Part shown: one piece after another, positions 12,886-31,274 of the stretch
How positions within the stretch are numbered: the stretch's first letter is position 1
Layout: each line of letters opens with the position of its first letter
Assembly: GCA_002104945.1 (NCBI GenBank)
Contig: MCFH01000051.1
Coordinates: 124,001-188,000, forward strand
DNA from: Piromyces finnis finn
Taxonomy: Eukaryota > Fungi > Neocallimastigomycota
Reading direction: 5' to 3'
Length of the DNA stretch: 64,000 nt
The notes under the pieces: generated by a model
Seen by the model: the letters and a program-made list of their open reading frames with translations, nothing else
The model's database searches: none
What the model was told of the DNA's origin: nothing
Translations under genes and position numbers: made by a program

Positions 12886-12955
12886 TAACATGAATTATAA
12901 TTTTAATTAAATTAATAATAAAGTTTAAAATATTTGATGCCGTTAAAAAAAAAAT
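12886..12955 (+). mobile_element. Extremely 5'-truncated LINE copy (about 70 bp of 3' terminus plus A11)
   Basis: Near-identical to the 3' end of the full element (ACATG.ATTATAATTTTAATTAAATTAATAATAAAGTTTAAAATATTTGATGCCGTT-polyA). AAAGATTTG flanks both sides (12877-12885, 12959-12967). Confidence 0.85.
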
Positions 12956-13020
12956 TTAAAAGATTTGCTGTTAATAAAAAAAAAATTATTAAAGTGTTTA
13001 ATATTAAAAGATTAAATGCA

Positions 13021-13209
13021 ATAATTCTAGTGTATTTAACAATTATCAATGTTCAAAAAATATAAAACAACAACCAAGAGCGTCAGGCCAGGAGGCCAGC
13101 GCAACCAATGAAGATCATAATTTTGTCCCATGATAAAATTTTGATCTTTGGCTCGGTGTCCCATGGAAGTCAAATACAATTATTATACCTTAGTATAATA
13201 GTGGCTTTT
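13021..13209 (+). mobile_element. Older, internally deleted LINE relic (ORF C-terminus plus start of the 3' UTR)
   Basis: Collinear blocks match about 27213-27600 of the full element, e.g. CCAAGAGCGTCA/GGCCAGGAGGCCAGCGCAACC...GATCATAATTTTG...GTGGCTTT, with internal deletions. Confidence 0.85.
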
Positions 13210-14478
13210 TCACACCTTGTCAATTACATTCCTAAATTTAGAAAATACACGTGGTGCAAATCAAGTAGGACACTTGATAAAAAATTAAAGAAACATGGAG
13301 ATGTTAAAGCAGTTAAAAACTTTTATTGGAAAGATCTCAAAGGGAATTCAATCAAAGTGCAATATTATGATGATAATAAATTTAGTGAAACTAAAGATTT
13401 TATTAAATTATGTTATGAATACCCAGAGTTTGCCTATGGCTTCTACTGGCTATTGAAAGCAAGAAGCGGATACAAGTTGGATGCTAGAGTTGCCAAAGCT
13501 GCTAAATTTGTTGATCCAGTTTGTCCTAACTACTGTCCATGTTGCAAGTGTGGAGATCAAAGTATTAAACATTGGTTATTAGATTGTCCAACATTTAGAG
13601 ATATCCGTATTAAACATTATGATTCCATAGTCTAGCTACTATATTTTTTCAGTCAACGTAATTCCAATAGTCCTATCAATAATAATGAAAATGTTAATAT
13701 CAGTAGAGATAGCAATAACATTAATAGTAATAGTAACAATAGTAGTAATAATAATTACAATAGTAATAGTAACAATAGTAATAATAGAAATAGTAATAAT
13801 AACAATAGTAGTTATAGAAATAATAATACTAGTAATGATAGCAATAGTGAAGATAATAATTCTAATTTAGATAGTAATTTAGTTAATGATAGTAATAGTT
13901 CTAATAATCCGGTGAATATTAATGTGTATGATTATTCTAGTGTGTGCAGTAAAATATTTAAATTCCTTCTTGGGGGAAGAAGTTTTAACAATATTAATTA
14001 CAATTCAAGGGAATGGAAAGAACTTTGCAAGCGTCAGATTCAATCTGGTACTAACGAAGGAACACCATTCTTGACGGTAACCGCGGAACTTCTAACCAAA
14101 ATCATGCCTTTTGCTATTGGCCAGCAATGGTCAATGTTTAAAAGGTTTGAAGCAACACCCAAGAGCGTCAATGCTGAAGAAACAGTAAGACAGGCCAGGA
14201 GGGCCAGCGCAACCAATGGAGATCATAATTTTGTTCCATGACAAAATTTTGATCTTTGACTCGGTGTCCCATTGGAAGTCAAATACAATTATTATACTTT
14301 AGTATGATAGTGGCTTTCTTACTTTAATTAAAATTACTAGAATACATTATACCCAATTTTTATTCATTTGTGTTTATTTAAACATATTTTTTTTATTTTT
14401 ATTTTTATTTTTTAATTTTTTATTACATGTATTATAATTTTAATTAAATTAATAATAAAGTTTATAATATTTGATGCC

Positions 14479-14511
<33 letters not shown>
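13210..14511 (+). mobile_element. 5'-truncated LINE copy (Zn-finger region, Asn-rich tail, 3' UTR, A30); ORF broken by TAG at 13633-13635
   Basis: High identity by eye to 26498-27802. CAG>TAG at 13633 relative to the intact copy; ends TTTGATGCCGTT-A30. Confidence 0.95.
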
Positions 14512-14513
<2 letters not shown>

Positions 14514-16825
14514 AACTAAAATATTAAAAATCAATATCTTCATGTAAAATGATATAAATAATTTACTTTAAAATTATTTTCTTGTCTTGACCTTAAAAAA
14601 ATTATTGATTTTTTTATGAAAATTTTTATAGTATTAAAATAGATCAAATTATGAATATATTAGACTTTTTTTTCTCTCTCAAATTAATGCAAATTAAAAA
14701 GTATTATATATTAGAAATTTAAAATTAACTTTAATTATTTTATTAATAATAATTTTAAAGAGTCTTCTTTATAAATTGTTTATATTACAAGAATTTAATA
14801 CATTATTATTAAAAATGTAAAGTCATTGTTATATAAAAGAAATAATATTATGTTGATATTTTTTATGAATTTTATTTTTTTAAAGAAATATTGACAACAG
14901 TATATATATATATATTCTTTTATTATAATAAATAATATAGTATTACTTCTTTTTTTTTTTAATGATTTTTTCATTGAAATAATGTGAACGTATTAATTAT
15001 AATTTATTAAGAAAATCCTTAAAGATTTTAATGTGTAAACTTATCATATAATTAAATAACATAGTATAAATTCACTTAATTTATATGAATAAAAAGATTA
15101 TATAATTACTATAAAATGTTGTATATTGATATTTCTATGAATACTCGCTTTTTACAAAACATTATCACTGGATGCTTTTATAACTATTTGTTTAAAAGGT
15201 ACTTTTCAATTATTGCTACAATTATGAAATAAAAAATATTTATATACTTAATTAAAAACCTCATAAATTAAAATTCATATATTAAATTTTTCCGATATTT
15301 TACATAAAAGTACTTAATATTGAATATAATTTTAATTCTCCACATAAAATTAATATAATTTGGTGGCAATATTTTAAAATTATTATATGGCTGTAAGTGG
15401 CAGAAATATTTTCAAATTTTATAAAAGTAAATAAATAAATAATATATTAATTAAATAAATGTTCAATTAAGAATATATATATGTTTTTTCAATATATTTT
15501 ATCTATTGGGTTTAAAGTAAATTAAGGTGTTACAAAATATTAGGATAAATCATTATATAATTATATATATATAAATTTATGTGATTTTATTTTATGAAGA
15601 CCTAATAATAAAAACATAACCATTATATAATGAAATTTTATGATTTTATGATTTTATAATTAAAAATTTTAATATTATATAGTATATTAAAGTAAAAAAA
15701 AAAAAAAAAAAAAATCTGAAGTGTAGTATCATATATAATCATTTTTTAGTATTTTCTCTGCTTTCTTTGATAATATCTTATTTGCTTTTCACTCTTTTCA
15801 TTCTCTAATTTTCATTATTATGATTTTCATTTTCTTTGTTATTTTACTATTATCATCAAATGAAAACTTATGCTTCTATAACTGATATTTTTAAATTTTA
15901 AATTTTAAATATTCAATTTTCAAAAAAATTTTTTTTTATTATTATTAAATATATATAAAAATTAAAGTAATTAAAATAAAAAACATAAACAAATAAATGA
16001 AATAGGTTTAACAGTATTTTAATGGTAAAATTAAAGAAAGAAATACTATTATAAGATGCTATTATAACAGTTCAATATAACCATTGATTTTTGACTTTTA
16101 AAGATCTCGATATTTGACATTAAATGAAATTAATTATATAATAACAAATTTCTTTGAATAATTAATATAAAAATAGCAATTAAATATTACTATATTATAG
16201 TTAAACTAGCAATAAATTTATATTGAAAATGAAAATGTTAAATATTTATACCTTTTTTTTAAATATAATATGATTTAATTAACTTTTAATTATATATTAA
16301 CATATAACAACAAAATATACTACTATATATTTATATTTATTATACCGTTATTATTATAAACTTAAGTCTAAACATTTTTGCTTAATTATTCTTTTATTAT
16401 TTTATTATTTATAAAGAAAGAAAAAAACTATATAGCTACAGCAAAACTATCTTTATTTTATTTTTTTTAGAATTTTTATATTATTTTTAATTATTTTTTC
16501 CTTCTTCTTCATTTTATGTTTTTGAATGTCTTTTTCTTTAAAAATTTTATCTTTTCTTAATATATCATACGAAATTTCCATTGTAAATTTTGTTTAATAT
16601 ACTAAAATAAAATCATTTAAATTTTTACATTTTTTCTGTTATATCAATTTTTATGTCTAATTCTAAAATGTATAAAGAAAATTATTATTAATTAGTATAA
16701 AATTAAATAATTATTTAAATAATTTATAAAAATAACAATAAAATAAAATTCTAGAAATTTCATTTTATTAACAAAATTTTTTTTTATTTGCTTGCTTTTG
16801 CTTGAAGCAAAGAAAAATAAGCTAT

Positions 16826-20041: not shown

Positions 20042-21658
20042 ATGAAAAATATCTACTTTAGTTTAGTTCTTTTAGTAGCCTCTTATGTTAGTGCTAGTGT
20101 CGCTAATCTCAAAGATGGTTGGTATTTCATTAAAAATCCTTCAACTGGAAAGTATCTTCAAGTTAGAGATGAAGAAGGAAAAAATGTTGCCAATATTGAA
20201 ATTGGCTCAGGACGTAAATCTGATGGACAAAAATGGAAATTAACTAATGTTGGTGATGGCTATGTCACATTAACCTCTGCTCTTGGTGAATATAATATTG
20301 ATATTGCTAATGGTGAAGATAAAAATGGAGCTAATGTTCAAATCTATGAAGCATATGGTGGTGATGCTCAACAATTTGTTATTATGACCACTTCTACAGA
20401 TAACGCCTATTCCATTGGAACTAAGGCAAGTTCAGGTGATAAGGTTATTGATATTGAAGGTGGATATAGTACTGATGGAACCAATGTTTGTCAATGGAAG
20501 AGTAACAGTGGACCAAATCAAGTCTGGATTTTTGAAAGTGCTGGATGTTGGGCTGAAGCATTAGGATATGAATGTTGTAGTACTTGTCAACCATCACAAT
20601 ATAAAGATGAAAGTGGTGAATGGGGTGTTGAAAATGGTGAATGGTGTGGTATTACCAATGACAATTGTTGTGCTCTTGGTTATCCATGTTGTCAATCAAC
20701 TTCTTCTGTAGTTTTCACTGATAACACTGGAAAATGGGGTATAGAAAATAATGATTGGTGTGAAATAAAAGAAAAACCAAAAACCACTACAACTAACTCT
20801 CCAGCTCCAGCTCCAACTTCTTCTGATAATAACAATGAACAAACATACAGTTTTGGATATGCTCTTAAAAACAAACCAGTTCCATCTAAGGGTTGTGGTA
20901 AGTCATTAAGTCTTCCAAAAACTGGATCATTTGAATTCAGTTGGTCTGGTGGTAGACGTACTGTTCGTATTGATATTCCAGATAACTATAATAACAACAA
21001 CCCATACCGTTTAATATTCGGTATGCACTGTATGGGTGGATGGGCCGGAGGTGTCCAACAAGAAGGATATTATGGTTTAAAGCCATTAGATACAGGAAAG
21101 ACAACAATTTTCGTTGCTCCAGAAGGTAATGGTAATCAAGCTCCATGGGGACAAGGTGATTACACTTTATTTGATGAACTTCTTAGTAAGTTAACTAATG
21201 ATCTTTGCATTGATACTTCCCGTGTCTTCTCTACTGGTTTCAGTTACGGTTCTATGTTTACTAATGGTCTTTCATGGAATCACCAAAAGGTTCTTCGTGG
21301 TGTTGCAGTTTATGAAACTGCTGAACGTAATATTTGGCTTCCAAAGAATACTGGTGAACCAATTGCTTGGATGGGTGTTCTCGGTTTTGATGATGGACTT
21401 TGTACTCCAGAAATGGGCCGTAATGCTCGTAATATTATCCTTAAGAATAATTCTGAAGGTGGTAAGGCTGTTAACGAACAAGCTCAAGAAGCTCAACGTA
21501 ATTCCAAGCATTTATGTTATGATTACAAGACTGTTGATCAACGTTTCCCAGTTCGTTGGTGTACTCAATCTGGAGGTCACATTTGGGATCACAAAGATCC
21601 AGGTTCCAACCAATCATGGGTTCCACAAGCTACTTGGGACTTTTTCACAAAGTTCTAG
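20042..21658 (+). CDS. Secreted cellulosomal esterase: signal peptide - CBM13 (ricin beta-trefoil) - 2x fungal dockerin (CBM10-type) - linker - CE1-like alpha/beta hydrolase; intronless
   Basis: QKWKL and QVWIF (QxW) repeats; dockerins CWAEALGYECC...WGVENGEWCGI and ALGYPCC...WGIENNDWC; esterase nucleophile motif GFSYG and C-terminal GGH. Confidence 0.88.
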   Translation: MKNIYFSLVLLVASYVSASVANLKDGWYFIKNPSTGKYLQVRDEEGKNVANIEIGSGRKSDGQKWKLTNVGDGYVTLTSALGEYNIDIANGEDKNGANVQIYEAYGGDAQQFVIMTTSTDNAYSIGTKASSGDKVIDIEGGYSTDGTNVCQWKSNSGPNQVWIFESAGCWAEALGYECCSTCQPSQYKDESGEWGVENGEWCGITNDNCCALGYPCCQSTSSVVFTDNTGKWGIENNDWCEIKEKPKTTTTNSPAPAPTSSDNNNEQTYSFGYALKNKPVPSKGCGKSLSLPKTGSFEFSWSGGRRTVRIDIPDNYNNNNPYRLIFGMHCMGGWAGGVQQEGYYGLKPLDTGKTTIFVAPEGNGNQAPWGQGDYTLFDELLSKLTNDLCIDTSRVFSTGFSYGSMFTNGLSWNHQKVLRGVAVYETAERNIWLPKNTGEPIAWMGVLGFDDGLCTPEMGRNARNIILKNNSEGGKAVNEQAQEAQRNSKHLCYDYKTVDQRFPVRWCTQSGGHIWDHKDPGSNQSWVPQATWDFFTKF

Positions 21659-22090
21659 ATAATTAAAAATTTTATTTTTAATAATATAAAAATATATAAA
21701 AATATATAAAAATATATAAATATAAATGTAAAATATAAAATATAAAATAAATGTAAAATAAAAAATAATATATACAAAAATTATGTATTATTTAATAACG
21801 TCAAAAAAAAAAAATTGAAAAAACAAAAACGAAAAGCGATGAAAAGAATAAATAAATAAAAAAAAAAAAAATGATAAAATAATTTAATTATTAATGTGTA
21901 GTTTAAAAGATGTTTTTATTTTTATTTTTATCATTCAAAAGTCTTGTATATTTTTATTTTAGTAAAATTATATTTTTTAATATAAGTATATTATAGCATG
22001 ATGTTTATATATTTGATCAAATTTTTCTGTAATGAAAAATAAATAATGGTGTATACAACATAAATTTGATGTTCTTTTTATGAATAACAA

Positions 22091-22338
22091 TCCCTCTTGG
22101 GAACGTGCCTTCATTTATTTAATAAATGTAGTTTCTCAAGGGGGTCTACTCATGCTCATGGTACTGAGAGAGTAGAAAGAATTAAATCCAAGTATTGCGC
22201 AATGGATGCTTGGTGCCCTCTTAGGAATGTGCCTTCATTTATTTAATAAATGTAATTTCTCAAGGGGGTCTACTCATGCTCATGGTACTGAGAGAGTAGA
22301 AAGAATTAAATCCAAGCATTGCGCAATGGATGCTTGGT
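22091..22338 (+). repeat. Two tandem 124-bp monomers at the LINE 5' end
   Basis: CCCTCTT(G/A)GGAA...GATGCTTGGT starts at 22092 and again at 22216, with only a few substitutions. Confidence 0.95.
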
Positions 22339-22981
22339 TAGTCTTCAAGGGAAAATTATTAGGACTAAGCTCATGGTACTGAGCGATTAAAAAACATTTT
22401 ATTCATCAAATTTAAGTATTTGATGAATAAGTGAATGTTTGATTTTTCAGGTAAGTTTGTATAGTATTTAATTAGAAGAGTAATACATTTTGTTGCTGTA
22501 TTTTTTCTTTTATTCATGTATTCATGTAGTACTACTCTTCTCTTGTAAGAATCCAATGTAGTCAACTTTAGCATTTGCATTGTACTTTTATATTCATGTA
22601 GCTATTGTTGTATTGTTTCTTGTAAGAGACTGATTCACTCTACATCATGTAAAAATACTATTCACAAGCTTTCTGGTGTCGACATTCTTGATTCAAATTT
22701 TTTACCAATTTAAATATTTAATGAAAAGTAAAGTCAAACAAGTTTAGTGTCAAAAAGCGAATCGAATTTACTAACAACAAACCAAAACTAGAATTTTTAA
22801 AGAAAATTTACAACTAGAATTCAAAAAAAGAAACTTTAAACAAAGCATCGTAACAATTTTTGTACTATCCAGTACTTTTAAGAAGAGAGAGAGAGACAGA
22901 TTTTTTTCCATATACGTTATATTTGTAATTTTTATTAGTATTTATTTTATATTCAATATTTTTTAATTAGAATTTATTATC

Positions 22982-25900
22982 ATGTCAGTCCTTTATATTA
23001 AAGATAAGAATTATATCAGACGTGGTACCCGGTCTTATGGTATCCCCTTAGATGATATTCGCTCCTTCTTTATCCGTGGTATTCGATCATGGTCAGTAAA
23101 TATGCTATGGGAAAAACTCGAGGTTATTCTAGAAGATAAATTTAATTCAGTTATTAGTGTTAAATATTTTCAGACTTTCAATGATCACTTTTTCTTAGTC
23201 AAGGTTCATGGTTCATCAAAAGATTGTATTAAAATCTTACACATGTTAAAGAAGAAACTTTCAGTTACCTCAATTTCCTTTTCAGCTCGTAGTAGAAGGA
23301 ATCACAAATACACTTTTTCCACTCTCAAACGTAAAATTTTAGTTTCTAATAAACATCAACATTCTATTCAACAATCATTTCAACAATCAGTTCAACAATC
23401 AGTTCAACAATCTCATCAACAATCCGATCTTCAACAAGATCTTCAACAGGATCTTCAACAAGTTTCCCATCATGAAAATATTCCAGATCTACAGCAAACA
23501 CAATTTCAATCTCAACATTCAACAATTAATTCTAATAGTTCTATCAACTCTGATAACAGTTCAATAGTTGATAGTTCTTCAGTTTCACAGCCATCTAGTA
23601 ATAGTTCTACTTATTCCTCTGATGCATCATCCATTAATAACGATGACTTTAATAATAATAATAATAGCAACGATTCTTCCTCATCCAACAAGCCTGATAA
23701 CTTTTCTTTTTGTCTTAGTTGGAACACCAATGGGTGGAATCACGAAAAGAGAGATAGTATTAGCTATTTCACAGCTATTTTCAAACCATTATTTTTATGT
23801 TTCCAAGAAACTGGTAATGGTTCTGGATCGAATACAAATTATCCTTGTCGTGTTACTTTGCGAAACTATAGACACTTTTTCAAGAAAGCTGACGAATCAG
23901 TTCCGGGAATGAGAGGTTTATATTTAGGTTTTCACAATTCATGTCAAGCCTCACTTGAAAACTTCTCTGGAAAGTATATTATTTCTATTTATACTTTTAG
24001 TCTCTGGAATAGATTCAAATGCTCGATTGGAAATGTTTATATGCCTCATAGTCATCACAACATCTATGTTGATCATGCAAAGTTAGAAGTTCGCTTGTGG
24101 TTACAAACTCATTCATCCCATCCATCGATTCTTGTTGGTGATTTTAATATGTCTAAAGTAAAATTATCCAACTGGTTATCAACTAATGGATTAGGAGATT
24201 GGGAAATTCTTCCGCTTAGAGGGTCTACTATCTCTTGGACTCGAGGTGATCAATCTTCCGACATTGACCATGCTCTTATCAATTCGAAGATGAAAGATCT
24301 TATTCACTCAGGATCATTTATAAATAATTTTTATCCTGTATCAGACCATAAGCCACTTCTTATTAATGGTAAAATTATTCCTATGGAAGATTTTTCTAAT
24401 GACTTTAATGTTCCTAAGAAAATTCTGAAATGGAATAGATTAAAATGTATTGAGGAAAAGGAATCTATTCTCAGTCATAATAAATTCCAAATACTTTCAG
24501 CAAAATTCAACGATCCTAATGTTTCTACAGATGAACTTTCCAAAGAGTTTACTTCAACTGCTTTTTCAATTGCAGACGAGCTCAGTATTACCTCAGCAAA
24601 TAATGTTATAAAGTCTTCATTTCATATTTCACAACAAATTTTTAATCTCCAAAAAATCAAAATGAAGTTGTATAAGAGATTTAAAAAAGAAAGAATTTAT
24701 GATATAGATGAATTTATTAAAAGAATTAAAATCTACCGTAAGCTCATTGATTACATCCACAAAAGATGTAATGAATTTAGGAAACAAGAATATCTTCATT
24801 GGATTAAAACAGGATGTGAGTATATGAAGAGTCATAATCCTAAGAAGGCCTGGAAATGGATCAAGAAAACTGCAAAAATTGGAAAAGATTCTTTCTTTAT
24901 TGCTCAACCAATTAAAAACAAAAATGGAGAATTAGTTGTTGCTACGGAAGAACAACTAGATGTGTGGAATGATCATTTCGAAAAGCTTGCATCAGATCCA
25001 AGTGGTGTAAGTCTTGATTTGGAGCATTGGTATGAAGAACCAACGAATAAACGTTTTTCACTCCCTATGCTTGATGAATGGGATATCAACCAAGATATTA
25101 GTATTGATGAAGTCAAGTCAGCTATCCTCTCTACTCCGAATTATAAAGCATCAGGTCCGGATGGTATTCCAATTGAATTTTACAAAGCATTAATTCCATC
25201 AAGTAATGATTCTAATAATGCTACAGATAATAATTCTTCCGGTAATACCACTTCAGATAATGATGCTTATGGTTTAAATTTTATTCTTAAATTATTCAAC
25301 CGTATTTGGGATGGAGACTTCCCCAACTCATGGAATGAATCCAGTATTGTTTCTATTCCTAAGAAGGGAGATTTGACAGATTGTGATAACTATCGAGGTA
25401 TATCACTTATCAATAATGGTATTAAGTTGATTTCCAAAATTGTCACCACTAGAATCTCAGAATATGGTCTAAAGAATAATTTCATTAGACCTGAACAATT
25501 TGGTTTTCGAAAAAAGGAAGAAAGTATCAGTCTTTTCATTTCAATCCAAGAAATATGCCGTAGACGTCAATTAGATAATAAAGAGACATATTTGGCCTTT
25601 TTAGATCTCAGGAAAGCATACGATTCAGTCCCAATCGGTAATATTCTCCATAAATTAGATTGTTTAGGAATCCGAGGTAAGAGTCTACAATTTATCAAAA
25701 ATTTATATTTAACATCTAAGGCTAATGTCAAATTAGATGGACAATTCTCGAAATCTTTTGATGTGAAGAAAGGAGTCCGTCAAGGTTGCCCACTTTCGCC
25801 TATTCTTTTTAATCTCTTTATTAATGATATATTTAGAGAGTGCGAAGATCTAGGAGTCAGTTTAGGTGACACTCGATGCTGTGGTGGACTTTTTGCAGAT

Positions 25901-27523
25901 GATATAGTTATTTGTGCTCCAACAAGAGGATGCTTAAAAAAGATGCTTAGAAGAGTTAATGAATGGGCACTGTATAATGAAATGGAATTTGGTATCCAGA
26001 AATGTTCAACGATGGTGATTCGTCCTGAATCAATAGAAAATCAGAACAAGAGAGATCCAACATTTTACTTAGCAGGACAACCCATTCCAACTACTGATTG
26101 TTATACTTATCTTGGTGTTCCATTTGATAAGAATCTGTCCCTTAAACCAGTAATTAAAGCTCTTAATAACAAGGTTTTGAAAGGGCTTTTCTCAGTCAGT
26201 AAATTCTTAAGAAATCCTAATATTCCTATTCCTTTCAAAAAACTAGTACTTAACTCACAAGTGATTAGCAGAGTTTCATACTTTGCACCATTACTTGGAT
26301 CCAACAAAGCTAGGTCTAGGATTGCTCAGAAGCATGTTAACAAAGGAATACGATGGGTTGCCGGAGTTCATAAAGCTGTATCGTTTATATCTTTATACTC
26401 TATCTCAAAAGATTTGAATATTCCTCCATTGTCAGCCAAATGTGCGTTAGCTCAGGTTAGATGTTTTAACAAATGGAAAAACTCAAATTGTATTATCTCA
26501 CACCTTGTCAATTACATTCCTAAATTTAGAAAATACACGTGGTGCAAATCAAGTAGGACACTTGAAAAAAAACTAAAGAAGCATGGAGATGTTAAAGCAG
26601 TTAAAAACTTTTATTGGAAAGATCTCAAAGGGAATTCAATCAAAGCGCAATATTATGATGATAATAAATTTATTGAAACTAAAGATTTTATTAAATTATG
26701 TTATGAGTACCCAGAGTTTGCCTATGGCTTCTACTGGCTATTGAAAGCAAGAAGCGGATACAAGTTGGATGCTAGAGTTGCCAAAGCTGCCAAATTTGTT
26801 GATCCAGTTTGTCCTAACTACTGTCCATGTTGCAAGTGTGGAGATCAAAGTATTAAACATTGGTTATTAGATTGTCCAACATTTAGAGATATCCGTATTA
26901 AACATTATGATTCTATAGTCCAGCTATTAAATTTTTTCAGTCAACGTAATTCCAATAGTCCTATCAATAATAATGAAATTGATAATATCAGTAGAGATAG
27001 TAATAACATTAATAGTAATAGTAACAATAGTAGTAATAACAATAGTAATAGTAACAATAGTAATAGTAACAATAGTAATAATAACAATAGTAGTAATAGA
27101 AATAATAATATTAGTAATGATAGCAATAGTGAAGATAATAATTCTAATTTAGATAGTAATTTAGTTAATGATAGTAATAGTTCTAATAATCCGGTGAATA
27201 TTAATGTGTATGATTATTCTAGTGTGTGCAGTAAAATATTTAAATTCCTTCTTGGGGGAAGAAGTTTTAACAATATTAATTACAATTCAAGGGAATGGAA
27301 AGAACTTTGTAAGCGTCAGATTCAATCTGGTACTAATGAAGGAACACCATTCTTGACGGTAACCGCGGAACTTCTAACCAAAATCATGCCTTTTGCTATT
27401 GGCCAGCAATGGTCAATGTTCAAAAGGTTTGAAGCAACATCCAAGAGCGTCAATGCTGAAGAAACAGTAAGACAGGCCAGGAGGGCCAGCGCAACCAATG
27501 GAGATCATAATTTTGTTCCATGA
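22982..27523 (+). CDS. LINE polyprotein: putative RRM-like N-terminus, Q/S/N-rich linker, APE endonuclease, reverse transcriptase, CX2CX8HX4C zinc finger, Asn-rich tail
   Basis: APE motifs SWNTNG, FQET, LVGDFN, SDIDH, SDHKP. RT motifs KASGPDGIP, YRGISL, EQFGFR, FLDLRKAYDSV, GVRQGCPLSP, FADD, YTYLG. Zn finger CPCCKCGDQSIKHWLLDC. No RNase H recognised. Confidence 0.95.
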   Translation: MSVLYIKDKNYIRRGTRSYGIPLDDIRSFFIRGIRSWSVNMLWEKLEVILEDKFNSVISVKYFQTFNDHFFLVKVHGSSKDCIKILHMLKKKLSVTSISFSARSRRNHKYTFSTLKRKILVSNKHQHSIQQSFQQSVQQSVQQSHQQSDLQQDLQQDLQQVSHHENIPDLQQTQFQSQHSTINSNSSINSDNSSIVDSSSVSQPSSNSSTYSSDASSINNDDFNNNNNSNDSSSSNKPDNFSFCLSWNTNGWNHEKRDSISYFTAIFKPLFLCFQETGNGSGSNTNYPCRVTLRNYRHFFKKADESVPGMRGLYLGFHNSCQASLENFSGKYIISIYTFSLWNRFKCSIGNVYMPHSHHNIYVDHAKLEVRLWLQTHSSHPSILVGDFNMSKVKLSNWLSTNGLGDWEILPLRGSTISWTRGDQSSDIDHALINSKMKDLIHSGSFINNFYPVSDHKPLLINGKIIPMEDFSNDFNVPKKILKWNRLKCIEEKESILSHNKFQILSAKFNDPNVSTDELSKEFTSTAFSIADELSITSANNVIKSSFHISQQIFNLQKIKMKLYKRFKKERIYDIDEFIKRIKIYRKLIDYIHKRCNEFRKQEYLHWIKTGCEYMKSHNPKKAWKWIKKTAKIGKDSFFIAQPIKNKNGELVVATEEQLDVWNDHFEKLASDPSGVSLDLEHWYEEPTNKRFSLPMLDEWDINQDISIDEVKSAILSTPNYKASGPDGIPIEFYKALIPSSNDSNNATDNNSSGNTTSDNDAYGLNFILKLFNRIWDGDFPNSWNESSIVSIPKKGDLTDCDNYRGISLINNGIKLISKIVTTRISEYGLKNNFIRPEQFGFRKKEESISLFISIQEICRRRQLDNKETYLAFLDLRKAYDSVPIGNILHKLDCLGIRGKSLQFIKNLYLTSKANVKLDGQFSKSFDVKKGVRQGCPLSPILFNLFINDIFRECEDLGVSLGDTRCCGGLFADDIVICAPTRGCLKKMLRRVNEWALYNEMEFGIQKCSTMVIRPESIENQNKRDPTFYLAGQPIPTTDCYTYLGVPFDKNLSLKPVIKALNNKVLKGLFSVSKFLRNPNIPIPFKKLVLNSQVISRVSYFAPLLGSNKARSRIAQKHVNKGIRWVAGVHKAVSFISLYSISKDLNIPPLSAKCALAQVRCFNKWKNSNCIISHLVNYIPKFRKYTWCKSSRTLEKKLKKHGDVKAVKNFYWKDLKGNSIKAQYYDDNKFIETKDFIKLCYEYPEFAYGFYWLLKARSGYKLDARVAKAAKFVDPVCPNYCPCCKCGDQSIKHWLLDCPTFRDIRIKHYDSIVQLLNFFSQRNSNSPINNNEIDNISRDSNNINSNSNNSSNNNSNSNNSNSNNSNNNNSSNRNNNISNDSNSEDNNSNLDSNLVNDSNSSNNPVNINVYDYSSVCSKIFKFLLGGRSFNNINYNSREWKELCKRQIQSGTNEGTPFLTVTAELLTKIMPFAIGQQWSMFKRFEATSKSVNAEETVRQARRASATNGDHNFVP

Positions 27524-27759
27524 CAAAATTTTGATCTTTGGCTCGGTGTCCCATTGGAAGTCAAATACAATTATTATACTTTAGTATGATAGTGGCTTTC
27601 TTACTTTAATTAAAATTACTAGAATACATTATACCCAATTTTTATTCATTTGTGTTTATTTAAACATATTTTTTTTTATTTTTATTTTATTTTAATTTTT
27701 ATATTACATGTATTATAATTTTAATTAAATTAATAATAAAGTTTAAAATATTTGATGCC

Positions 27760-27805
<46 letters not shown>

Positions 27806-27867
27806 ATGAATAACAAAGCCGGGTAAATATATTTTAAGCCTCAACAAAGAACATCAATGCTAAAGAA

Positions 27868-29125
27868 TCCCCTTGGGAATGTGCTTTCATTTATTTAATA
27901 AATGAAGTTTCTCAAAGGGCTCGCGAGTAGATATAAATCTAAGCATTGCGCAATGGTTAGTCTTTATTATGAAATATTATAATAAAGACTAAGCTTATGG
28001 TACTGAGCGACTTAAAAAACATTTGTCCATCAAATTTTTAAGTTATTTTAATGGATAAGTTGAATGTTTGATATTCAAGTAAGTTTGTATAGTATTTAAT
28101 TAAAAGAGTAATACATTATTGTTGCTGTATTTTTCTTTTATTCATGTAGTACTACTCATCTCTTGTAAGAATCCAATGTGATGTGGTCAATTTTAGCATT
28201 TGCACTGTGTTTTTATATTTTTGTAGCTATTGTTGAATTGTTTCCTCTAAGAGATTGATTTATTCTACATCATTTAAAAATTCACAATCTTTCTGGTGTC
28301 GACATTCAATTCTGCTTTAAAATTTTATCAATTTAAATATTTAATGAAAAGTAAAGTCAAATAATTTTAGTGTCAATAATTGAGCAAACCAAAACTAGAA
28401 TTTACAAAGATATTTGCAACTTGAATTTCATAAGAAACTTTAATCAAAGCATTTGAAACAATTTTTTGTACTATCCAGTACTTTTTAAAGAAGAGTGATA
28501 CAGTTTTTTTTCCCATATACATTATATTTATAATTATTTATTAGTATTCTATTTATTTTTAATTCGAATTAATTAATATGTCAGTCCTTTATATTAAAGA
28601 TAAGAATTATATCAGACATGGTACCCGCTCTTATGATATGCCCTTAGATAATACTGGATCTTTCTTTATCCGTGGTATTCGATCATAGCTAGTTAGTAAA
28701 TAATGGAAAAAACTCGAGGCTATTCTGAAGGATAAATTTAATTCAGGTATTAGTGTTGAATATTTTAAGAATTTCAATAATCACTTTTTCTTAGTCAAGG
28801 TTCATGGTTTAATGAAAGACTGTAATAAATTCTTACACATCTTCAATTTATTTTTCAGCCCGTAGTAAAAGAAATCACAAATATATTTTTTCCTCACTCA
28901 AACATAAATTTTTAGTTTTTAATAAACATCAACAATCAATGCAACAATCAATTAATCTCATCAACATTCATATCATCAATCTAATCAAATTCAACTTCAA
29001 CAAGATCTTCAATAAGATATTCAACAATTAATTCTAATAGTTCTATTACCTCTGATAACAGTTCAATAGCTGATAGCTCTTCAGTTACACAGCTATTTAA
29101 TAATAGTTCAACTAATTCCTCTGAT
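27868..29125 (+). mobile_element. Older degenerate copy of the same LINE family, retaining only the 5' UTR and frameshifted ORF start (3'-truncated)
   Basis: Begins TCCCCTTGGGAATGTGC like the intact copy and aligns through the 5' UTR. ATGTCAGTCCTTTATATTAAAGATAAG at about 28578; stops and frameshifts follow; similarity ends at CCTCTGAT near 29125. Confidence 0.92.
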
Positions 29126-31274
29126 TCAATCGGGCACTTGCGAAGGAATTATTTTCTAGAAATTAGAGCAGTTATAAATCGTTATTATTAATATTATTAA
29201 TATTATTAATATGCGTTAATATATATTATATTTAATTTTAATTTTATTTAATTTTTATTTAATTATTTTTATTAATTAATATTTTGTAAACAAGTAAAGG
29301 CAAAATTTCTTTTTTGGAATGATATAACTCGGTTCAATACAATTTTATTTTTAAGGGTTTTTGTGATTAACTACTTTATTATTAATTAAATTACAATAAA
29401 AGACGTGTTTTTAATAATTTGTATTTTTCATAATCTATACTAAATATTTAAGAATAGTTAATAAAAAATTTAATTTAGAACTAGTAATAATATAATGGAA
29501 TTAATAATAATATATAAAATAAATATGGAAACATTAATAAAATAAGAAATAACATTTATTTATGTACAATAATTTTTATTGATGATCATTGTGAAATATA
29601 CTCCATGACTATAGCTTTTTATGTAAATTTAAGATTTTTGTAGTAAATAAATTTATGGATTTTATGTAATTATTATAAATTTACCAATTTATAATAATTA
29701 AAGTTTATAATCTATATTTTATATCAGAAAGTTGAATAATATAATTAATCATAATTATTATTGATTGACCGTTAATCCAAAATAAAATTGTCCCCCGTTA
29801 TAATTACTTAAATTGAATCTAGTTTTTAATATGAAATATGATTCATTGATATATCTTCTATTATTTTAAATATAACTATACATTATATTTACAAATATAA
29901 TACGTTACTAATATATTATAATAATTACATATTATTTTACATTGTACTTACATCACTAATATATAAGTTTATTTAAACTACTATCTATTATAATTACATG
30001 CTAATAATAAACCATGGCATAATTTTATGATTTAAAAATTAAAAGGTATTTTAATATTATTTATTATTTACAATATTATAATATCTATAAAAATATAAAA
30101 TACAAGAAATACAAAAATTTTTATAACGTGGCTTGACTATTAACAAATTAAATAGATAGTAATAATACATAATTATTAATATAAATATTAATTAAAACTT
30201 TAAAGTATTAAATTAATGTATTCCAATTCCAATATTCCAATGTAGGAATAACTAATATAATATGTGGATAATTATTATTTAATATGAATTTTATATTTAA
30301 GTTTTTGGTGAAAGAAAAATTTAAATAAGAAAAAATCTTAATAATAAATGATGATATTAGTTGTACTTTAGATTTGGATATATATAACATGTTTAATAAA
30401 ATAATCTTTTTATAGTATAAATGATAAAATTTATTTTAAATTCCATTTTAATTAATTTAAAAATATAATAAATAAACATTTGAATAAAGAAATAATAGCG
30501 AGTTGTTGTTTAATTATGAATCTATTAACAATTTATTTAACTATTATATTAAATATTTCTATTTCATACTTAAATTTTTTTTTTTTTTGAAAATATTCAA
30601 ATTACTTAATTTAGTTTAACTAAAGTTTTATTGATATTTATTATTATAAAGTTTAATGAAATTGTTAAATGTGTAGATGAATGTCAGTATATTTTAATAA
30701 ATAATTTCTATTAGTATTAGTTAAAATTATGAAAATTGTTTTTTATGAAAAAAGATAAGATATATCAATTTATAATGTTTTTTAATGTTACACAAATCGA
30801 TATATTAGCATATATTTTTATAATATTTTATTATTTTTTCAAGTTTAGCAAAAATTGAAAGAATAAAGTCAAAATATTTCCATATTTATGGTATAAAATT
30901 AAGATATTTTTATTTGTAAGTAGTCATAAATTGAATAAAGTAATAGTGAAAAATTCCGTATTTATGAAAAAATTCAAATTTTATAAATGAAATCTGTTCA
31001 TCAATCTATATATCTATTTTTATATTTTTTATATTCTGATAATGATAAATATTAAATTATTGATGATAATTGTATAAACATCTTAGTAACTGATATTCAA
31101 TTAAAATAATTAAAATGACTGTATACATTTTGATTATTAAGCAATAAAGATGTAAAATATTCAGTAGAAGTAATAAATATAATAAAATATAATTAATAAT
31201 GAAATTATTGTGAATTAAAATTACAAATCTTAATTCTTTCAAAAACAGCAACAGTAACAACAACAACAATAAAT

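Follow-up and report, generated by a model that had tools for sequence, protein, structure and literature searches.

A candidate structured RNA domain anchored at base 1 of a LINE family in anaerobic gut fungi

Clades of long interspersed nuclear elements (LINEs) define their 5' ends differently, by internal promoters, by promoter monomers, or by ribozymes of the hepatitis delta virus (HDV)-like or twister type. Structured or repeated 5' modules have been described as HDV-like ribozymes in R2, RTE, and L1Tc elements, as twister variants in Perere-3, and as the monomers of mouse L1 (PMC3774820, PMC3185411, PMC8501958, PMC9022269). Our literature search found no structured or repeated LINE 5' module described for anaerobic gut fungi, whose very AT-rich genomes hold many copies of the LINE family considered here. 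We analyzed one member of this family at 22091-27802 of a 64,000-nt stretch of the Piromyces finnis genome (contig MCFH01000051.1, positions 124,001 to 188,000; hereafter the window, to which all coordinates refer). An original prediction, made from the letters of this DNA alone, had proposed that the tandemly repeated leader of the element forms a structured RNA whose copies covary. Our comparison of this leader with those of related elements supports a selected sense-strand RNA domain that lies at the exact 5' end of the element and is anchored at base 1. Features described below lie on the plus strand, apart from the target-site duplication, which is given without a strand.

The domain belongs to one full-length endonuclease-type LINE. 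A single 14-bp target-site duplication frames the whole element, with the left copy (TTTATGAATAACAA) at 22077-22090 and the identical 14-mer at 27803-27816, directly 3' of an A40 tail (27763-27802). A single open reading frame (ORF) of 1513 amino acids (22982-27523) encodes an N-terminal domain, a Ser/Asn/Gln-rich linker, an apurinic/apyrimidinic (AP)-type endonuclease, a reverse transcriptase, and a Cys/His motif, with Pfam matches to RVT_1 (7.6e-36), Exo_endo_phos (1.6e-6), and zf-RVT (0.002). With reverse transcriptase and AP-type endonuclease in one ORF, a poly(A) tail, a duplication, and no long terminal repeats, the element is an active-looking LINE of the AP-endonuclease type, and the structured stretch is its 5' end, as had been proposed. 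One extra T (22091), probably a non-templated addition, separates the duplication from the element's first C; the base before CCCC differs among copies.

The predicted 124-bp tandem unit was recovered both by Tandem Repeats Finder (22092-22338, period 124, 2.0 copies, 96% matches) and by a repeat search in which 22092-22214 and 22216-22338 were 97% identical. Unit 1 (22092-22215) scored 149 bits with our covariance model R1, and unit 2 (22216-22339) has four differences from unit 1, one of which gives an A.C mismatch in the first hairpin, H1. Each unit folds into three hairpins, and the stems that had been proposed were found where the prediction placed them. H1 (22092-22144), obtained with both RNAfold and RNAalifold, runs as CCC...GGGGG from the first element base. 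Its 12-bp outer stem (CCCTCTTGGGAA at 22092-22103 with TTCTCAAGGGGG at 22133-22144) includes two G.U pairs and is followed by a 5'-side internal loop, CGUGCCU, and by an inner 7-bp stem (CATTTAT at 22112-22118 with ATAAATG at 22122-22128) closed by the loop UUA. H2 (22145-22176), likewise seen with both programs, consists of TCTACTC (22145-22151) paired with GAGTAGA (22170-22176) around CTCA-TGGTAC-TGAG (22155-22168) and displays the apical loop UGGUAC (GGUAC at 22160-22164). H3 (22188-22213), supported by pair counting on nine copies, pairs CCAAG(T/C)AT (22188-22195) with ATGCTTGG (22206-22213) around TGCGCAATGG and presents the conserved loop UGCGCAAUGG. The H3 stem thus stood as predicted, but the sequence described as a palindrome, CATTGCGCAATG, is better read as the conserved H3 loop, because other lineages retain UGCGCAAUG and have lost the palindrome.

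The hairpins noted downstream of the two units are also all present (TTAGTCTT at 22338-22345 with AGGACTAA at 22361-22368; GCTCATGGTACTGAGC at 22369-22384; ATTCATCAAA at 22401-22410 with TTTGATGAAT at 22419-22428), but they are not separate motifs. Since model R1 matches 22341-22428 from one end to the other (18 bits, with an E value of 1.5e-5 for that stretch), they make up a third, degenerate unit, which comprises GUCUU/AGGAC, GCUCA-UGGUAC-UGAGC, and UCAUCAAAU/AUUUGAUGA. The leader is therefore laid out as two units and one decayed unit followed by about 550 nt of non-repeated sequence, and the module is 40% GC, whereas the flank has 12% and the remaining leader 25%. The 350-nt structured stretch folds at -116 kcal/mol (z = -8.6 against dinucleotide shuffles), and the minus strand of the same 350 nt gives z = -8.9. 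Because both strands score alike, palindromic DNA and an RNA structure cannot be told apart by folding energy alone, and the distinction rests on comparison with other lineages.

For this comparison, we identified 26 relatives of the ORF at 43-63% protein identity in metagenomes, one NCBI assembly, and one Orpinomyces gene model; a metagenome scan gave eight family loci among 80. Leaders were obtained from thirteen loci that fall into five lineages, G1 (the window element and L007), G2 (L001, L005, L009, and L006), G3 (L002, L003, and L083), G4 (L084 and L085), and G5 (L010 and L086), and the contigs of P0007, P0008, P0015, and P0018 lack the leader. Every element of the thirteen loci starts at CCCC, and the upstream flanks are unrelated, some being host genes and some pieces of other LINEs. 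The base before CCCC is T in 10 of 14 junctions, A in two, and G in one, and the near-identical elements L003 and L083, inserted in different places, have T and A there, respectively. Since the starts agree while the flanks and the preceding base vary, the 5' end is exact and the preceding base probably non-templated. A more distant lineage (L091, 27% identical) has a short leader unrelated to the units, which confines the domain to the LINE family of the window element.

All five lineages retain H1 and, for the most part, also H2 and H3. Their stem sequences differ and show compensatory changes, and G.U pairs occur on the sense strand. In the minimum-free-energy structure of every single leader examined, base 1 or 2 pairs with a G 31-105 nt downstream. 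Of the 14 copies folded, 13 have an H1 outer stem of 7-13 bp, the exception being the decayed copy in the window (3 bp). A CCCC...GGGG stem equivalent to H1 occurs in each lineage, and the sequence past CCC(C)U is lineage specific. L007, at 43% protein identity, retains UGGUAC as its H2 loop and UGCGCAAUGA as its H3 loop, while the H2 stems are exchanged (CUCA/UGAG to CUCG/CGAG; UCUACUC/GAGUAGA to UCAUCU/AGAUGA), with one U-A pair of H1 turned to A-U. RNAalifold, which the prediction had advised, was run lineage by lineage on plain MAFFT alignments and recovered H1, H2, and H3 where present, with four compensatory pairs in G1, three in G2, and one in G3. When nine copies of H3 were aligned gap-free on the conserved loop, 82% of cells were paired, compared with 62.5% in shuffles (0 of 500 reached 82%) and 31-57% when partners were slid by 1-3 columns, and 8 of 10 pairs had changed on both sides. 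A model built from G1 alone found L005 (22 bits), L001 (19 bits), L009 (16 bits), and L010 (22 bits) end to end at their exact 5' ends and matched L002 weakly. In 12 of 13 copies, the sense strand folds more stably than its complement, and G.U pairs number 44 on the sense and 15 on the antisense strand; because composition-corrected z-scores favor the sense strand in only 8 of 13, we regard this bias as moderate evidence. Nearly no unpaired bases are conserved across lineages beyond CCCC/GGGG and a GUA core.

The covariation that had been noticed between two copies in the window thus holds across five diverged lineages. The second of those copies, at 27868-29128, is an older, truncated copy of the same LINE with a broken frame, 76% identical to the window element and matched by model R1 at 62 bits. 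It begins 51 bp downstream of the target-site duplication and contains one leader unit, from which H2 and the 3' arm of H3 are deleted, followed by a degenerate unit. The features attributed to this copy, TTAGTCTTT/AAAGACTAA, GCTTA-TGGTAC-TGAGC, and GTCCAT/ATGGAT, were all observed.

Pairing between the loops of H1 and H2 is likely, judging from complementarity at equivalent positions. GUGCC in the H1 internal loop (22105-22109), as anticipated, is complementary to GGUAC of the H2 loop and is a candidate partner in a kissing or pseudoknot contact, with same-position counterparts in three other lineages. In the resulting four lineages, the complementary segments lie at H1 bases 14-19 and in the H2 apical loop: GUAUCA x UGGUAC in L007, CCGUA x UACGG or UGCGG in G2, six non-palindromic pairs (CCGUAU x AUACGG) in L006, and GUACU x AGUAC in G3 and L010. 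The flanking pairs vary between lineages yet remain complementary.

The expectation that no known ribozyme core would fit held up. In searches against Rfam, neither the window leader nor any of eleven family loci nor two leaders queried by themselves gave a match; HDV-like models gave none at E up to 10 in the window and four other lineages; and hammerhead, twister, twister-sister, pistol, hatchet, hairpin, and VS ribozymes were without a match in the window leader or its relatives. Matches at permissive thresholds (e.g., mir-590 and IMES-4) were at chance level, far below gathering scores, and were discarded. ARAGORN detected no tRNA-like cloverleaf, which could serve as an RNase P substrate, at 21900-23000 or in the whole window. 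As in HDV-like ribozymes, in which P1 starts at the first base past the cleavage site, H1 pairs base 1 or 2; the nested double pseudoknot of that fold, with its 3-bp P3 and L3, P1.1, P4, and a J4/2 whose catalytic C precedes the 3' strand of P2, was not found in our structures, in which the inner stem has 5-8 bp with a 3-5-nt loop or is absent (G2), no GG is available for P1.1, and the partner of the H1 loop is the H2 apical loop. An HDV-like fold fitted by hand failed on P3, P1.1, and P2.

The fungal unit matches none of the catalogued LINE 5' modules in sequence or fold but shares features with several. Like Pr77/L1TcRz of the trypanosomatid L1Tc/ingi LINEs, it is a short, conserved signature at base 1 of related lineages, within the first ~80-120 nt (PMC3383444, PMC3185411, PMC4035085). 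Pr77 is thought to be active both as DNA, as a promoter, and as RNA (PMC3383444); it is, however, conserved in sequence and is an HDV-like ribozyme, whereas the fungal unit conserves only the sequence CCCC/GGGG and comprises three hairpins and a loop-loop contact without a match to HDV models. The HDV-like ribozymes of R2 and other LINEs share with it a helix that begins at element base 1, internal-loop bases that pair downstream, and an exact 5' end with variable added bases (PMC3774820). The fungal outer stem is 7-13 bp, compared with 6-7 bp for P1, its inner stem is 5-8 bp, compared with 3 bp for P3, P1.1 is lacking, the pairing partner lies in a hairpin loop rather than in a 3' tail after P4, and the fungal LINE is not site specific. 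The twister T-variants of Perere-3 in Schistosoma mansoni likewise give a non-site-specific LINE a structured RNA at its 5' edge, beside target-site duplications (PMC8501958), but there the duplication supplies part of P1, whereas the first fungal stem lies wholly inside the element and no twister match was found. Mouse L1 monomers are also tandem 5' units of ~100-200 nt, younger outside and with a decayed one beside a non-repeated leader (PMC9022269, PMC6454616). Their number differs between mouse copies and may do so in the fungal family, in which the copy at 27868 has one unit, L085 has at least 1.4, and genomic joints show partial units. The sequences are unrelated, and the fungal units, unlike those of mouse, are phased exactly on the element 5' end and conserved as RNA structure.

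The phase of the repeat offers an explanation for its origin. On its left, the duplication starts at base 1 of the element itself, one extra G (22215) sits where units 1 and 2 join, and because a single target-site duplication frames the two-unit element, both units arrived in one insertion. A run of DNA sequencing showed the leader and the unit junction in thousands of contigs, which indicates that the LINE family is abundant and its two-unit form common. In the same run, joints of a partial leader, one base, and 22092 occurred at single-copy depth (130-180), with partial leaders ending at 22122 (three events), 22174, 22208, and 22294; the extra base at the 22122 joints is G, C, or A. Another lineage has the same repeat phase with a 135-nt unit (L085), and L084 and L009 contain other leader duplications. 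Non-LTR reverse transcriptases are documented to add non-templated bases and to jump between templates (PMC8857657), and we consider template jumping at the RNA 5' end the simplest reading of these junctions. The reverse transcriptase would reach the RNA's 5' end, add one base, and jump to a second leader RNA, and the two-unit form, once made, would be inherited. Template jumping would explain why CCC stands on the right of every unit junction with one variable base before it. The variable extra base between donor 5' end and acceptor is shared with the jumping described for non-LTR reverse transcriptases, although that activity is known mainly in vitro and for the fungal LINE is read from genomic junctions alone (PMC8857657). 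The repeat phase thereby suggests a simple origin for arrays of 5' monomers and may bear on the unexplained origin of those in mouse L1.

Sequencing also bears on whether the leader is transcribed. Three probable RNA runs cover the leader from about 22096 onward, with the junction between units 1 and 2 included, and their depth is zero on 21900-22052, where the DNA run has ~125-140; contigs near 22096 cannot show transcription starts. No splice joint that removes the leader was found in the probable RNA contigs. An intron beginning at GTAAGT (22451), a motif conserved in the older copy, was considered and rejected, as the probable RNA contigs are unspliced there and the sole GT..AG joint came from the DNA run. 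The 890-nt leader (22092-22981) contains 20 upstream AUGs, six of which stand directly before a stop codon (22126, 22250, 22524, 22556, 22596, and 22647), so that ordinary scanning to the ORF start looks unlikely.

A second conserved leader block lies nearer to the ORF (22491-22665, and 28116-28290 in the older copy) and includes the hairpin AGAG-ACUGAUUCA-CUCU at 22625-22641. It was found in 11 copies, in all lineages with a long leader (beyond the window, in L001, L002, L003, L007, L009, L010, L084, L085, L086, and L092), and the closing pair is A-U in six, G-C in four, and U-A in one, with none broken. Its sequence conservation exceeds that of the 5' units. The hairpin has 4 bp and an invariant loop core, UGAUUCA, and the block contains several repeats of a YWUGUAR motif, often CAUGUAG.

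We tentatively read the unit as a compact, cis-acting 5'-terminal RNA domain that would mark and shield the end of the RNA, be bound by the element's own protein, evolve with its lineage, and perhaps overlie an internal promoter, and we assign this reading, which draws on analogy with other LINEs, a probability of about 0.45. The element RNA, as copied into DNA, begins at the C of CCCC, which is base 1 of H1. The 5' RNA of R2 binds the R2 protein, and the fungal leader may similarly be bound through the N-terminal domain of the ORF product (residues 1-131, 22982-23374), which is conserved in the family at R14, G15, R17, G20, and W37. The first ~100 residues are predicted by an AlphaFold model to adopt a beta-alpha-beta-beta-alpha-beta fold (predicted local distance difference test score >90), the topology of RNA recognition motifs; this domain has no Pfam family, and Foldseek returned generic ferredoxin-like matches only. 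The RNA domain may overlie an internal promoter in the same DNA, as in L1Tc Pr77 (PMC3383444).

Several points weigh against this reading. The sample of independent lineages is small, at five, and several of the alignments were adjusted visually or by the model. G4 (L084 and L085) retains only H1, and the L004/L089 subfamily, whose protein is 49-54% identical, seems to lack the long leader, having instead an AT-rich leader of ~75-110 nt directly after a poly(A) run and no structured 5' units. The loop contact is weak in each lineage (P = 0.005-0.3 against random loops), and the GUAC core common to the contacts is self-complementary. Protein binding by the leader is something that we purely infer, the predicted N-terminal fold matching generic ferredoxin-like proteins only. 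The sequencing evidence consists of assembled contigs, and the assignment of three runs to RNA is itself a guess. Finally, the joints of a partial leader to 22092 could be nested insertions; these would account for some genomic joints, though not for the junction of the two units in the window.

Each unit might instead be a self-cleaving ribozyme, of an undescribed class or very derived, that cuts just 5' of the first C and frees the RNA from read-through transcripts, in the manner of the HDV-like ribozymes of R2, RTE, and L1Tc and the twister variants of Perere-3. The exact 5' end at the base of a helix would fit such a ribozyme, as would an RNA starting with C, which is unusual for RNA polymerase II, and caps leave an extra G in L1 copies that is no regular feature here (1 of 14 junctions). 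The domain is also compact, relatively GC-rich, and possibly pseudoknotted, the 20 upstream AUGs fit an uncapped, internally translated RNA, and ribozymes have precedent in several LINE clades (PMC3185411, PMC3774820, PMC8501958). We nevertheless consider this explanation rather unlikely. No lineage yielded an Rfam ribozyme match, even with E values up to 10 allowed, the nested double pseudoknot of HDV-like ribozymes does not fit, since the H1 loop has its partner in a hairpin loop and both P1.1 and a 3-bp P3 are missing, G4 lacks H2, and the scarcity of conserved unpaired bases beyond CCCC/GGGG and the GUA core disfavors a catalytic core. Moreover, the two-unit form is common, transcribed, and retrotransposed, and because this is the form that is inherited and transcribed, the inner unit does not appear to be cut efficiently. 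That the unit represents a new class of 5'-end-defining RNA, either an unrelated self-cleaving ribozyme or a structure directing a host nuclease to the base of H1, seems to us improbable; if true, a fungal LINE could escape from read-through transcripts while lacking its own promoter. A different explanation places the function in the DNA, with units that are internal promoter monomers as in mouse L1, inverted repeats that are sites for dimeric factors, and RNA folds that are incidental. A LINE needs an internal promoter, both strands fold equally by z-score, parts of the leader are duplicated also in L085, L084, and L009, and the sequence includes ATTGCGCAAT, which is the optimal C/EBP-type basic leucine zipper site. 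Tandem units before a non-repeated leader, with an older decayed unit nearer to the ORF, also recall mouse L1 (PMC9022269, PMC6454616). However, stems are replaced wholesale between lineages while pairing is retained, which fixed protein half-sites would not allow, and G.U pairs build up on the sense strand. Other lineages hold UGCGCAAUG on one strand with the palindrome lost, and CATTGCGCAATG was rejected as a C/EBP-type DNA site since only one half is retained there. We therefore also regard incidental folding over a DNA-level promoter as rather doubtful, although a promoter role may coexist with an RNA role, as for L1Tc Pr77 (PMC3383444).

The upstream AUGs, six of them AUG-stop, and the absence of a leader-removing splice joint in the contigs would equally suit a translation element, either an internal ribosome entry site (IRES) or the take-off site of a shunt across the leader, and a second conserved hairpin block lies nearer to the ORF. 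The units, however, lie ~650-890 nt away from the start codon, at the very 5' end, their most conserved feature is their position at base 1, which an IRES does not need, and the second block is the better candidate; a translational role for the units is in our judgment quite unlikely. That the repeat is a neutral by-product of template jumping, and the inverted repeats of the leader are without function, is least plausible and very improbable. The duplication does bear the mark of jumping at the RNA 5' end, and the inner unit carries an H1 mismatch, but the architecture is retained at 43-63% protein identity while stem sequences turn over, and the module is a GC island in surroundings of 12-25% GC. 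A conserved RNA domain anchored at base 1 and without a catalogued match, as in the reading that we favor, is a concrete object for cleavage, protein-binding, or promoter tests; if it proves only to be a protein-docking leader, it would be a modest addition to retrotransposon biology.

Other observations concern the element and its neighbors. The linker after the N-terminal domain holds a 12-bp tandem repeat (23356-23462). A 14-bp hairpin with 13 of 14 positions paired spans the ORF stop codon (27503-27536; GATCATAATTTTGT, loop TCCATG, ACAAAATTTTGATC) and recurs in 3' fragments at 13094-13164 and 14202-14272, making it a candidate 3' recognition element for the reverse transcriptase. These fragments belong to a pile of 5'-truncated pieces of the same LINE at 12888-14522 (67 nt, 125 nt, and 1.3 kb), the longest of which is 97% identical to the full copy; every fragment ends in or adjoins A runs. 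In several unrelated contigs, one element's poly(A) tail precedes the start of the next element by 50-190 bp (window 27763-27868, 51 bp after the duplication; L083 1-73, 58 bp; L004 1-110; L089 1-100; L091 1-199), and because this spacing recurs, members of the family tend to sit head to tail. At L084 1-82, L007 1-48, and L010 2500-2818, a piece of the ORF of this LINE family directly precedes the CCCC start, which points either to nested insertion or to a template jump into an internal site on the RNA of another element.

The window has 21% GC, and beside the LINE lies a gene (20042-21658) with two CBM_10 dockerin modules and ricin-type lectin repeats, whose product is presumably a cellulosome component; a gene with such dockerin modules is as expected for an anaerobic gut fungus.

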